The notes: generated by a model from the letters alone, not told the origin. DNA of 64,000 nucleotides from Paragordius varius (GCA_964247055.1 OZ176051.1:4650001-4714000); one strand, 5' to 3'. Shown: positions 8,201 to 62,183, numbered from the stretch's first letter. Numbers and translations: made by a program.

Positions 8201-8725
8201 TTTGTAGATAAATCTTCATCTTTATCGTGAGAATTTTTTTCCATAGATTTATGGGAACCTTTGAGCGTAAACTTATAATAGTAATTTGGAAAAGTTGAGG
8301 GTAAAAGTTTTGCGATTAGCCCGCTTTTTATGTGTGTTAATGCAACAACACCCAGAATAAAAAAGTAACCAGTGACCAAAAAATTTATATGTTGCTTCGA
8401 AAAAATCTATTAGTTAGAAATGAAATAGCTACTTTGAAAAATATATATAGCCCTAAAAGAGTAGCACTTGCTGTTAAAGGGAAAATGGCCGCATCTTTAT
8501 GAGATATAAAATCAGATTGTTCCCCAGAATCCTATTATATTTAGAAAATATTTTTACCTTTTGTTTTTGATGATGGACGACAGACTTCAGAGCTCCCAAA
8601 AATATGGGAAAAACGGCCATTATAAGCAAACTAAAATCGGCTACCAGAATACCGCTGGTAGTGGCTTGAAACCGATTAGTTGCATTGTTAGTTATGTTTA
8701 AAGTCGCATTTACAAGATCGCCCAT
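5210..8725 (-). CDS. HM13: Signal peptide peptidase (minor histocompatibility antigen H13), 382 aa; exons 8725-8558, 8531-8433, 8406-8196, 7813-7599, 6984-6927, 6614-6494, 6005-5796, 5276-5210
   Basis: HWIANNIFGLAF, GGLFIYDIFWVFGTNVMVTVAKSFEAPIK (YD motif), LGLGDIVIPG (GxGD) and QPALLYLVP (PAL motif); exon phases sum to a full ORF. Confidence 0.96.
7052..7077. repeat. (AT)n microsatellite
   Basis: Direct reading of the sequence. Confidence 0.95.
7201..7340 (+). mobile_element. tRNA-derived SINE-like element, antisense in an HM13 intron
   Basis: GC-rich island with an A-box-like TGATATAGTAGG and a B-box-like GAGTTCGAAC at tRNA spacing, an anticodon-arm-like GGACTCTTA, no acceptor-stem pairing, and a non-tRNA body. 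Confidence 0.55.
8407..8432 (-). other. 26-nt spliceosomal intron (HM13 intron 2)
   Basis: GTAGCTATTTCATTTCTAACTAATAG; removal joins LYIFFK to IFSKQHINFL in frame. Confidence 0.9.
8532..8557 (-). other. 26-nt spliceosomal intron (HM13 intron 1)
   Basis: GTAAAAATATTTTCTAAATATAATAG; removal joins HHQKQK to DSGEQSDFISHKDAAIFP in frame. Confidence 0.85.
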
Positions 8726-8989
8726 AGCACACGATTGCAATGAAATATATTTGCACTAGGAAAAATATTTTTATTCCTATCCATCGGTGAAAAACTATTA
8801 ATACCATTTCTATTTTTTATATTGTGGAAAATAATCTTTTCGATATAAAAAAAGTTTTATAAGAAGAAAATTATTTTCGTTTGATATATTTTTAAGTGTT
8901 GGCATGCAAAAACTTTAGTGAAATATTTATACTTTATGAGCAAGGGCTATCAATGGCTCGCCATAGTTCGGTGCTATTTGAGCATTTAA

Positions 8990-9536
8990 CACTTAAATTT
9001 AAATTGGGATATCTAAATACCCCAGACTAAATTTAAATTATGATTTTAAAAAACTACTGAAGGAAACGGTCCCAATTTAAATCGATGCCTTTATCCTAAA
9101 ATAAATTATATAACTATGCCAAAATCTCTCAATAAAATTTTGTTTTGAAAAAAAAGTTCCATGTCAAACTACTTCGACGCCATTTTTATTCTACAAAATT
9201 TTTGCAAAATATCGTCTTCATTTAATTTTACGGGTAAAATTCAAGCTAATTTTTTATTTAAATTACATCTAACATAAATAGAAATAAAAAAAGCGGTTTG
9301 CTTTGTATTATTTTTCAATTTTACCATTGCACACATGTCACGTTGACTAAATTTTAACCTTTCGCTTTTAACTTAAAATAAGTAATATCAATATTTTTGA
9401 ATAAATTTTCTTATATATTTCGGTTTATTAATGTTATATAAGGGAATAATTTTACCATGGTTTATTTTAAACAGACCTGGGGTATCCAACTACCACAATT
9501 TGAATCGAACTAAAATGAATGTATTGTATCCAAGTG
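8990..9536. mobile_element. TTAA-flanked MITE (piggyBac-like ends), family copy 1
   Basis: TTAA-CACTT...AAGTG-TTAA ends; body matches 14295-14848 and 39069-39650 in reverse orientation. Confidence 0.75.
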
Positions 9537-59500: not shown

Positions 59501-61723
59501 TGAACTAAATTGTTTGCCATAACTTGTGCATTATTTTTGGTTGGGCAAAATATAAGACACGAAGATATAGTAGGTATTGATCTTTTTGAACTAGTTTCAG
59601 ACGCAAAACTATTTTCATTCAAAGAATCATTCTACAAAAGTTATATTTAAAAACATGATATTAACTAAAAATTACTATTGCATTGATAAATATTATATAC
59701 CATTTACAATTCAAACTAGCCCTTAAACAATTTATATTCCCCCTTAAACAATTCAAATTCACCCTTAAATAAATCAAATGTTTTTTAATACTAAAAATTA
59801 CTTATACTTTTTTTATATTTTTAAAAAATGAAATTTTGTGTAAATTAAAATATTACTGAAAATATAAAAAACTATGCCATTATTTTTTATATTAATGATG
59901 AATTATATTAGCCCAAACACATATAATTTATTTTTTGGGTGAATTTGAATTGTACAAGGGTGAATTTGAATTGTAGATGGTATAAAAATATTTAACTTAC
60001 CAATTTCATTCTTTTCCGGTCATATACTTGAGAGGCTGTAACAAAACCGTTTTCCTGTTTTATTTGAAAACAACAAAATATAAATTATAAAATTCATAAA
60101 AAAACACCATAAATTATAATTCAAACCTTTTCGCAATCTAAATTTTCTCCAAAGCTAGTTGATGGAAGGGACAAATAAAAGAGCATGTCGGGATCAAGCG
60201 ATAACAAGGTTTTATTATAATAGGTGGGGATTGGTAAAAAATGCAATTTCTTAACTATTTTTCCAACTGAATCATGGTTATTTGAATCGGACTTTTTTTC
60301 GATTATTTCATAGATTTCTTGTCCAATCTTCACATATTCACTGTGATAAAATGGAAAAGAAATAGCATTTGCTAAATATTATGTGACTTTTAAAGTTTTT
60401 TAAAGAAACCACTTCTATTTTGTTACAAATTACCAATAAAATTTCATGAAAATTGAATAACATAGTTTTAGGCTACTTACTTTAGTTTTATTGGACGAAA
60501 ACTAGCCTCATACATGGTGGCGTCCATAAATTGAAGCAAGTCGCCACAATTAGATCGTGTGGGAAGTGTAGCACTCATGCCTACAATTCGTATTTTACGG
60601 CATTTTTGTTGTCGATTGTTGGACATTTCACAAGATTTATTGTAAAACATGATCTATATTTCGTAATTTATGCTATAATTTAATGTTTATTTATAAAAGA
60701 AATTACTTTTAAAAACATTTTATAAAAAATGAAAAAGAGGGTAGATCTTAGGTATGAATACATCCTTTTATTTTTATATTGAAATGAAAAATCTCACTAA
60801 AAATAAATTACTTTGGTTATAAAATTTTCCAAAACTGCTGATCTATGTGTACCACTTTCGTATCCTAACATATGGATTTCATCAATCACAACAACATCTA
60901 AGAGGATATAAAATAATCAAATTTGTAAAAAAATTGAACATAAATAATTAAAATCGTCTGAAACACATTTTTCCAAAATTTGTATATGTTTTAAACGGTA
61001 AAATAAAAATTAAGAATATTTTAATAAAAACCATCTAAATTCATTATGTCGGAGTTAAAATCAACTTTCTACACAATAAAATGCATGTCCGACACATTAT
61101 AGTAAACAATCTAAAGGCCTTATGTTGTAAATTATTTTAGAAAACAGTCTTTTATATCGGCATATAGATTAGCATCGGTTGTGATATACCATTAATGGGT
61201 TTTACATACAAAGTATTAAATAAAATATAGGCATATAAAACGTAATATCTACCAAGTTTAGCGAGTAAAGATCCATTGTGTTCCGTAACAAATGCGTCAA
61301 ACAAGGAATTTGCTTTTTCAAAGGTAGCAATGTAAAGAGATGCCCTTCGCCTTCGATTTTTAGGTGGAAATACTCCTTTGCCACCCGCATATTCTTCCAA
61401 GATGAAATTGAAATCATCGCTGTAAAGCGTTAATTTTTGAATCTTATTAAATATAAATAGGTACTTTTTCTTGAACGATTGCAATATATGGTAAAACAAA
61501 TAAAACATTCTTTTCTTCCAAAAGTTTTTCTAACATAATGATTTCAGCAATCAAAGTTTTCCCGCCCGACGTAGGCATGTTGCATATAAAATTGTTAGTT
61601 ATTGATTGATACAATTTTAAACAATATATTTGCCAATCTTTAATTTATGCTATTTTTACCATATAATGCAAAAATATTTTCATTTTTTTCAAGAGATTTC
61701 CGAATAATAGGGTTAATTTCCAT
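41534..61723 (-). CDS. HELQ: HELQ (Hel308/mus301) helicase, about 1057 aa; exons 61723-61660, 61637-61465, 61442-61253, 60897-60812, 60653-60481, 60340-60127, 60054-60001, 59631-59189, 58774-58578, 58134-57954, 56952-56699, 56634-56495, 56375-56293, 56073-56001, 55897-55825, 44199-44039, 42926-42825, 42760-42584, 42316-42203, 42049-41915, 41620-41534
   Basis: LYDWQ (Q motif), [47 protein letters not shown]...[38 protein letters not shown]...[10 protein letters not shown] and [14 protein letters not shown]. All 20 introns are GT-AG with matching phases. Confidence 0.93.
42974..44007. mobile_element. Non-autonomous TIR element in a HELQ intron (possible 3-bp ATG duplication, PIF/Harbinger-like ends)
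   Basis: GGGTGGGGTGATAAAAAA ... TTTTTTATCACCCCACCC termini, each flanked by ATG, with subterminal AAGTCA/TGACTT repeats; another copy lies at 63830-64000. Confidence 0.6.
44318..55605. repeat. Intronic satellite, about 11.3 kb, mainly 40- and 37-bp monomers (GAATAAGAAACTATGATGGGTGAATGAAACGGTTAACGGT and variants) with higher-order periodicity
   Basis: Roughly 280-300 tandem monomers with recurring variant order, divergent edges and one unique interruption at about 48003-48088. Confidence 0.98.
56985..57266. mobile_element. TATA-flanked MITE, copy 2 (HELQ intron)
   Basis: TATA-CCATTTAC ... GTAAACGG-TATA; homologous to 11889-12206. Confidence 0.78.
57570..57990 (-). repeat. Decayed tandem duplicates of the HELQ motif-V exon end and its donor site
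   Basis: CCAGCCG.AAAGTGGTAGTAC and TAAATTGACACC recur at about 57573, 57712 and 57845, and in the exon at about 57965. Confidence 0.6.
59045..59101. repeat. (AT)n microsatellite
   Basis: Direct reading of the sequence. Confidence 0.95.
59700..59980. mobile_element. TATA-flanked MITE, copy 3 (HELQ intron)
   Basis: TATA-CCATTTAC ... GTAGATGG-TATA; homologous to copies 1 and 2. Confidence 0.78.
61443..61464 (-). other. 22-nt spliceosomal intron (HELQ intron 2)
   Basis: GTACCTATTTATATTTAATAAG; removal joins PYIAIVQEK to IQKL...EEYAGGKG in frame. Confidence 0.92.
61638..61659 (-). other. 22-nt spliceosomal intron (HELQ intron 1)
   Basis: GTAAAAATAGCATAAATTAAAG, phase 1; removal creates the Q-motif ALY-D-WQ. 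Confidence 0.88.
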
Positions 61724-61788
61724 TTCTCAACAGGTTTTAAATTTGAAAAACCTAACCGATTTTACATTCATATGCTTTAATTTTAATA
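61724..61788. promoter_or_regulatory. Putative bidirectional promoter / overlapping 5' region between HELQ and RBX1
   Basis: Only 65 bp separate the divergent start codons; no promoter motif was identified. Confidence 0.5.
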
Positions 61789-62183
61789 ATGGAATTAGAT
61801 GAGCCAGTAACATCTCAAGACCACGAAATATCGACTACTACATCTAAAACTTTTGAAAATAAAGAATCAGGAGTTTCTACAAATAAAAAACGATTTGAAG
61901 TTAAACCAATAATTATAAATTTTAGGTAAAAAAATGGAATGCCGTAGCTCTCTGGGCGTGGGATATGGTAGTGGAAAATTGTGCAATTTGCCGAAACCAC
62001 ATTATGGATTTGTGCATAGAATGTCAAGCTAATCAAGCTTCCGCAACGAATGAAGAATGTACCGTAGCTTGGGGAGTTTGTAATCATGCCTTTCACTTTC
62101 ATTGCATTTCACGGTGGTTAAGAACTCGTCAAGTTTGTCCCTTAGATAATAGGGAATGGGAGTTTCAAAAATATGGTCACTAA
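61789..62183 (+). CDS. RBX1: RING-box protein 1, 122 aa; exons 61789-61899 and 61926-62183
   Basis: KKRFE|[85 protein letters not shown]. Confidence 0.97.
61900..61925 (+). other. 26-nt spliceosomal intron (the only intron in the RBX1 CDS)
   Basis: GTTAAACCAATAATTATAAATTTTAG; removal restores the invariant [11 protein letters not shown]. Confidence 0.92.

Follow-up and report, generated by a model that had tools for sequence, protein, structure and literature searches.

In animals, introns of less than 30 bp are described from two lineages only, the myxobolid Myxozoa and Dicyema, both of which have compact genomes (PMC13644364, September 2026); the same study predicts that more such lineages exist. 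In the myxobolids (Henneguya, Thelohanellus and Myxobolus, with median lengths of 22-27 bp) most introns are tiny, and the genomes are compact (20-200 Mb) and poor in transposons. Their 5' signal is reduced to 'GTa' and their 3' signal to 'AG', with weakly conserved A residues before the AG, and myxozoans have a canonical U2 small nuclear RNA (snRNA) and the factor U2AF (PMC13644364). As summarised there, the introns of Dicyema japonicum measure ~26 bp and likewise carry reduced motifs, in a parasitic animal with a small genome and genome-wide shortening (Lu et al. 2019 and Zverkov et al. 2019, via PMC13644364). Here we describe six segments of 22-26 nt in a window of 64,000 nt from the nematomorph (horsehair worm) Paragordius varius (GCA_964247055.1, OZ176051.1:4650001-4714000; coordinates below are those of the window). 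Judged from the DNA of the window and its homologues, the six segments are most likely genuine GT-AG spliceosomal introns of the U2 type, and they appear to derive by extreme shortening from ordinary introns that are in part ancient.

The resemblance to the myxobolids is close: GT-AG segments below 30 nt in an animal parasite, a 5' site approximating GTa, a 3' AG preceded by an A-rich stretch, and conserved positions between conserved exons. The 'GTa'/'AG' reduction also agrees with that in Dicyema, which occupies the same size range. Unlike in the myxobolids, the tiny introns of the window are a minority (6 of ~26 modelled) and lie at the 5' ends of genes, in a bilaterian ecdysozoan lineage; they are accompanied by introns on the kb scale, a satellite of 11 kb and repeats of very high copy number. 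The dominance of tiny introns in a compact genome, typical of Myxobolidae and Dicyemida, is thus not seen here, and in contrast to Dicyema single genes contain introns of both size groups.

Tiny introns are also known from the ciliates Paramecium (~25 nt) and Stentor (15-16 nt) and from the Bigelowiella nucleomorph (18-21 nt). There a conventional spliceosome removes introns of the same size, so splicing at 22-26 nt is mechanically possible; in these non-animal systems virtually every intron is tiny, and the lengths are uniform. Schistosoma reportedly has small 5' introns and large 3' introns, with a short class of ~26-36 nt and up. The position effect, short at the 5' end and long downstream, is the same as in the window, in a different phylum.

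Six short segments in four conserved genes

The segments were localised by three-frame reading and exact string search in the window. The four genes concerned and the six putative introns, with exon junctions marked by a slash, are as follows:

5800-8725, minus strand: SPP gene (signal peptide peptidase, HM13-like), seven exons modelled, open frame of 359 aa
8532-8557, minus strand: SPP intron 1, 26 nt, phase 0, GTAAAAAT...TATAATAG
8407-8432, minus strand: SPP intron 2, 26 nt, GTAGCTAT...ACTAATAG, with CTAAC inside
13095-13462, minus strand: DAD1 gene, two exons, 114 aa
13226-13248, minus strand: sole DAD1 intron, 23 nt, phase 1, splitting a Val codon G/TA
41567-61723, minus strand: HELQ/POLQ-like helicase gene, spanning a satellite-bearing intron
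61638-61659, minus strand: helicase intron 1, 22 nt, phase 1, TAT G/../AT TGG
61443-61464, minus strand: helicase intron 2, 22 nt, phase 0, ..GAA AAA/../ATT CAA..
61789-62185, plus strand: RBX1 gene, two exons, 122 aa, zf-rbx1 match with E = 3.9e-25
61900-61925, plus strand: sole RBX1 intron, 26 nt, phase 0, GTTAAACC...AATTTTAG

In all six segments GT and AG form the 5' and 3' termini, precisely at the borders with the exons. A sequence-only reading of this DNA had already claimed six GT-AG segments of 22-26 nt in four genes; every one of them was located, and the outer coordinates are identical to the range it gave. Their 5' ends are GTAAAA, GTAGCT, GTAAAT, GTAAAA, GTACCT and GTTAAA, and their A+T content is ~73-88%. 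Segment length modulo 3 is 1 or 2 in every case, so that the frame is lost if a segment is retained, and a stop codon then follows within 6-27 codons (6/6). Excision of the six segments yields unbroken protein frames, which bears out the further claim that their removal restores the frame. Given the dinucleotide frequencies of the window (GT 0.047, AG 0.036-0.040), the chance of finding GT..AG at one exact homology break is ~0.0018, and at six breaks ~3e-17. The spliced products are collinear with homologues across the junctions in RBX1, DAD1, both helicase introns and SPP intron 2; for SPP intron 1 the support comes from open-frame logic.

The type of the introns was considered separately. 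U12-type introns were rejected on the basis of the 5' ends, which do not carry the conserved (A/G)TATCCTT (the consensus of the U12 branch site being TCCTTAAC). An Rfam search of the window returned no matches.

In DAD1, the Pfam DAD profile is matched at positions 3-65 by exon 1 and at positions 68-109 by exon 2. Of the two profile positions left uncovered, one is the residue that closes exon 1 and the other the codon split by the intron; excision gives the junction .../VCLRMQLNP. In the helicase, excision joins ...ALY/DWQIYCLK and ...IVQEK/IQKLTLYSD. A one-exon library search recovered the ortholog in the hairworm Gordionus (P0260), which matches the Pfam profiles DEAD, Helicase_C and POLQ_helical. 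Spliced exons 1-3 align to its residues 102-244 in a single BLASTP alignment of 143 columns with 59% identity, running through both junctions.

The SPP gene matches the Pfam profile Peptidase_A22B, and its match in PDB is SPPL2A. Exon 2 covers profile positions 4-33 and exon 3 positions 31-78; since these positions adjoin, the match continues across the intron 2 junction (GLYIFFK/IFSKQH). Exon 2 lacks a Met, and two stops lie just upstream of it in its frame, so that a preceding exon is required. Such an exon, beginning with ATG, lies at 8558-8725 and is joined to exon 2 by excision of intron 1 (HHQKQK/DSGEQ). Because exon 1 falls outside the Pfam profile, SPP intron 1 is the weakest-supported of the six. 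Searches with exon 1 gave no Pfam match, SPPL2A only in PDB, and only generic small membrane peptides in an Atlas feature search. At the other end of the gene, a further, last exon probably lies near 5213-5290.

In RBX1, excision produces MEL...KKRFE/..., and the restored stretch is identical in every RBX1 sequence that we fetched (P0001, P0002, P0007 and others). The best match is Gordionus sp. m RMFG-2023 (P0001), with which the window protein has in common an otherwise unconserved N-terminus; exon 2 is 96% identical.

Two further observations concern this end of the window. At position 61919, inside the tiny RBX1 intron, all contigs of two DNA specimens other than the assembled one carry G in place of A. 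An AAG thereby arises six bases ahead of the real acceptor; splicing to it would give TTT TAG and hence a stop in frame. If the G alleles are functional, we infer that the branch point would lie at or after 61919, at about -8 or -9. The helicase (minus strand) and RBX1 (plus strand) stand head to head at 61723-61789, with start codons 65 nt apart. This spacing implies either a shared and very compact bidirectional promoter or 5' ends supplied in another way.

Intron positions shared with Gordionus

The closest relative of the window genes in our searches was Gordionus, the genome of which has a similar base composition (26.93% G+C according to the Gordionus genome preprint; 23-36% G+C in the window). 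The comparison of intron positions covered DAD1 and both helicase sites; the Gordionus RBX1 (P0001) has no locus on record, and SPP was absent from the Gordionus loci examined. Both orthologs, P0260 (helicase) and P0177 (DAD1), map to the Gordionus chromosome OX940783.2. Three of the six tiny introns (DAD1, helicase 1 and helicase 2) occur at the same codon and in the same phase as Gordionus introns, and these three are orthologous to accepted introns.

The window DAD1 is identical to the corrected Gordionus DAD1 at 90 of 114 residues (79%). At the codon and phase 1 position occupied by the 23-nt intron of the window, Gordionus has a GT-AG intron of 44 nt (L001:5200-5243). The DNA of the exons beside the intron is 78% identical between the two, and the introns themselves differ in length and sequence. 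Introns of 125 nt and ~1.15 kb occupy the same site in two other eukaryotes, and many genomic open reading frame (ORF) fragments of other animals end exactly there. The DAD1 intron site is ancient.

The Gordionus DAD1 locus (P0177, L001:5001-5374) also contains an annotation error. The public annotation excises a conserved coding stretch as a spurious in-frame intron of 39 nt, leaving P0177 short of 13 residues, and splices the real 44-nt intron correctly. The error points to a disturbance of automatic annotation in hairworms by models of short introns.

At the first helicase site (Y/D, phase 1) the intron measures 22 nt in the window and 43 nt in Gordionus; at the second (EK/, phase 0) the lengths are 22 nt and ~6.4 kb. 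The minimal introns of Gordionus montsenyensis at the DAD1 and first helicase sites (L001, L002) share codon, phase, GT-AG ends and A/T-rich composition with their tiny counterparts, and are longer by ~21 nt (44 against 23, 43 against 22). The shortest Gordionus introns that we saw measure 43-45 nt, lengths that ordinary gene finders handle and that lie within the known animal range. The extreme shortening is therefore specific to the hairworm lineage of the window or to a subgroup of it.

Beyond the tiny introns, the helicase has a GT-AG intron of 355 nt at 60898-61252, where the Gordionus exon is continuous (P0260 residues 181-273, L002:10032-10310). Between the hairworm lineages, an intron has been gained or lost at this point.

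Intron lengths and alternative explanations

The length sample consists of ~26 introns in one window, 6 tiny and ~20 others. The tiny introns measure 22, 22, 23, 26, 26 and 26 nt. The 18 ordinary introns that could be modelled with exact GT-AG ends range from 64 to 1,112 nt, among them lengths of 64, 64, 138, 140, 153, 158, 267, 294, 312, 330, 355, 382, 488, 614, 1001 and 1112 nt, to which is added the satellite-bearing intron of more than 11 kb. In order along the genes, the SPP introns are 26, 26, 382, 614, 312 and 488 nt, and the exactly modelled helicase introns are 22, 22, 355, 158, 140, 1001, 64, 1112, 64, 267, 153 and 294 nt, with several more in the gene. The smallest ordinary introns and the satellite are located as follows:

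56635-56698, minus strand: helicase intron of 64 nt, GT-AG
42761-42824, minus strand: helicase intron of 64 nt, GT-AG
44318-55540, no strand assigned: tandem satellite of 11.2 kb with a period of ~40 nt, inside the helicase intron of more than 11 kb

No intron falls between 26 and 64 nt, so the empty gap at 27-62 nt described in the sequence-only reading persists in these ~26 introns. Its introns of 63, 72, 73, 79 and 94 nt are its own and lie outside the re-derived set. Tiny introns do stand beside normal and multi-kb ones, as it had also proposed: the shortest later introns of the same genes measure 64 nt and the longest more than 11 kb. SPP and the helicase have tiny introns in the first two positions, DAD1 and RBX1 as their sole intron; SNAP25 and RGS, two other genes of the window, have none. 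Two codon-usage scans of the window for more tiny introns were noisy and recovered only the RBX1 intron among the six.

From these lengths the sequence-only reading had drawn a stronger conclusion, namely that the tiny introns form a separate mechanistic class, for which the geometry of the spliceosome would have to be altered or a second mode of recognition would have to exist beside the conventional one. The two length groups with nothing between them (22-26 nt and at least 64 nt), the confinement of the tiny introns to the 5' ends of genes and the rough halving of the lower limit from the 43-45 nt of the shortest orthologous Gordionus introns would all fit such a class. We nevertheless consider it rather unlikely. 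Tiny and ordinary introns have the same weak ends, GT(A/T)...(A/T/C)AG, and the tiny ones match one Gordionus intron of 6.4 kb and two of ~43 nt, which leaves a class defined by length only. The sample is small (~26 introns) and the window itself bears nothing on the splicing machinery. Moreover, since myxobolids and Dicyema splice introns of 20-27 nt with canonical U2 snRNA and U2AF (PMC13644364), an altered spliceosome is not required by the data.

Under our preferred reading of the six segments as introns of the ordinary U2 type, a conventional spliceosome would recognise each tiny intron whole (intron definition). The signals would comprise a GTA-type 5' site of minimal extent and a branch adenosine that lies in the A/T-rich 3' half, ~7-11 nt ahead of the 3' AG; a polypyrimidine tract would be short or missing. 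Excision would then join the exons and restore the reading frame.

Every segment breaks the frame if kept, as would be expected of frameshifted pseudogenes or of tolerated insertions. This explanation is very improbable in view of the genes concerned: four different conserved genes are affected, their frames are otherwise intact and conserved, and the protein identities reach 79% for DAD1 and 96% for RBX1 exon 2, both against Gordionus in the comparisons above. It also sits badly with the presence of GT-AG at every break and with intron positions held in common with Gordionus.

The segments might also be artefacts of assembly or sequencing, that is, spurious short insertions in AT-rich DNA; they are short, rich in A+T (~73-88%) and come from a long-read style assembly. 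We used four sequencing runs (X1-X4), which represent DNA from two specimens: exons and introns are covered to an even depth, and the sequences differ from the window at many single bases. DNA contigs of X1-X4, from both specimens, span helicase intron 2 (61443-61464) without a gap, and gap-free DNA contigs of 461 nt from the second specimen span the RBX1 intron (61900-61925). Because gap-free short-word contigs of specimens other than the assembled one contain both segments, these two are not assembly indels. The check for such indels that had been suggested from the sequence was run for these two of the six segments, and both proved to be real DNA in other individuals. Together with the GT..AG ends of all six and the Gordionus introns at three of the six positions, this makes an artefact extremely unlikely.

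Programmed DNA elimination occurs in some nematodes, and the segments are similar in size to the short internal eliminated sequences of ciliates, germline-limited DNA that is cut from somatic DNA and not from RNA; we give this explanation hardly any weight, as the ends are GT..AG and not TA..TA, the sites match ordinary Gordionus introns, and no deleted or joined form was found at the two sites among the best-supported rows of the four DNA runs.

Several points weigh against the identification of all six segments as spliceosomal introns. The support from DNA contigs covers two of the six. The four runs examined were all DNA, and RNA-labelled runs under the same species label contained none of the sampled words. 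In a protein collection, no transcript-derived protein of this species matched RBX1 exon 2 or DAD1 exon 1, and the spliced RBX1 and DAD1 junction strings were not found in metagenome contigs. For SPP intron 1, our searches gave no homologue across the junction; its support consists of open-frame logic and of human HM13, which has a similar N-terminal membrane helix. The RBX1 intron lies three codons upstream of an intron implied by the genomic ORF of another organism (P0109), and because of this offset its position is not established as ancient. Lastly, the proposed branch points draw on A residues at -7 to -11, which are present in every tiny intron and which A-rich sequence (73-88% A+T) would be expected to provide by chance anyway.

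Genomic setting and meaning

The remaining genes of the window are the following:

~1.4-3.0 kb, plus strand: RGS gene
19493-25568, minus strand: TRIM-NHL gene, with a RING domain and NHL repeats
~31-36 kb, minus strand: SNAP25 gene, introns all several hundred nt or longer

Two exons of great length, 643 and 1216 codons, encode the TRIM-NHL protein, with ~500 nt between them.

The satellite at 44318-55540 comprises 289 copies with 87% matches, an extreme GC skew of +0.5 to +0.6 and an AT skew of ~+0.3; helicase exons homologous to P0260 flank it on both sides. Short arrays of a 21-nt unit (AGGGTGAATTTGAATTGTTCA) belong to a repeated element in helicase introns (56897-57294 and 59683-60080) and occur also at 12123-12201. 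The summed word depth of this element in the DNA runs is 10^5 to 3.6x10^6, against ~500 in the flanks. The element is therefore an extremely high-copy repeat family, and many contigs link its copies at 56897-57294 and 59683-60080. The stretches 11178-13021, 4199-4333 and 26458-27180 hold reverse-transcriptase fragments, with a weak match to Pfam RVT_1, and an ORF-like repeat (…NCIYTKIAKLDIYTKSICEN…) that occurs three times, twice in inverted orientation. Transposons are abundant in this genome.

Searches of the literature revealed no earlier account of such introns in hairworms. The main text of the study of 51 genomes cited above (PMC13644364) names only myxobolid Myxozoa and Dicyema. The word intron is absent from the Gordionus genome preprint and from the Mermithidae/Nematomorpha comparative preprint, and a full-text literature search on introns of hairworms or Nematomorpha gave nothing relevant. 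Judging by the sequence comparisons, the window very probably adds another lineage of animals to those with this already known type of intron, and the genomic surroundings are unusual.

Taken jointly, the observations permit a more far-reaching reading, which we put forward tentatively and hold to be doubtful as a whole. In this hairworm lineage the lower intron limit would have been roughly halved relative to Gordionus (from 43-45 to 22-26 nt), giving two sharp classes, ~22-26 and at least 63-64 nt; the tiny class would be found chiefly among the first introns of housekeeping genes, and the bilaterian genome that holds it would be large and rich in repeats. This might constitute a third independent animal origin of introns below 30 nt, the first not tied to genome compaction, through a lineage-specific relaxation of the spacing limits of the spliceosome. 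If that is true, part of the 'rampant loss of universal genes' and of the low BUSCO scores in Nematomorpha would be an annotation artefact, because ordinary gene finders cannot model such introns.

If the six segments are introns, hairworms would be the third animal lineage with introns below 30 bases, the first among ecdysozoans and the first with a large repeat-rich genome, and intron miniaturisation would be separable from genome compaction. Comparison with Gordionus, where introns at the same sites measure 43-45 nt and not 22-26 nt, would assist in dating the change and in dissecting it. Gene finders and RNA aligners with a minimum intron length of ~20-40 nt will break or lose such genes. 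The handling of short introns thus bears on the published claims of gene loss in hairworms and on their BUSCO score of 71.6% (Gordionus genome preprint).

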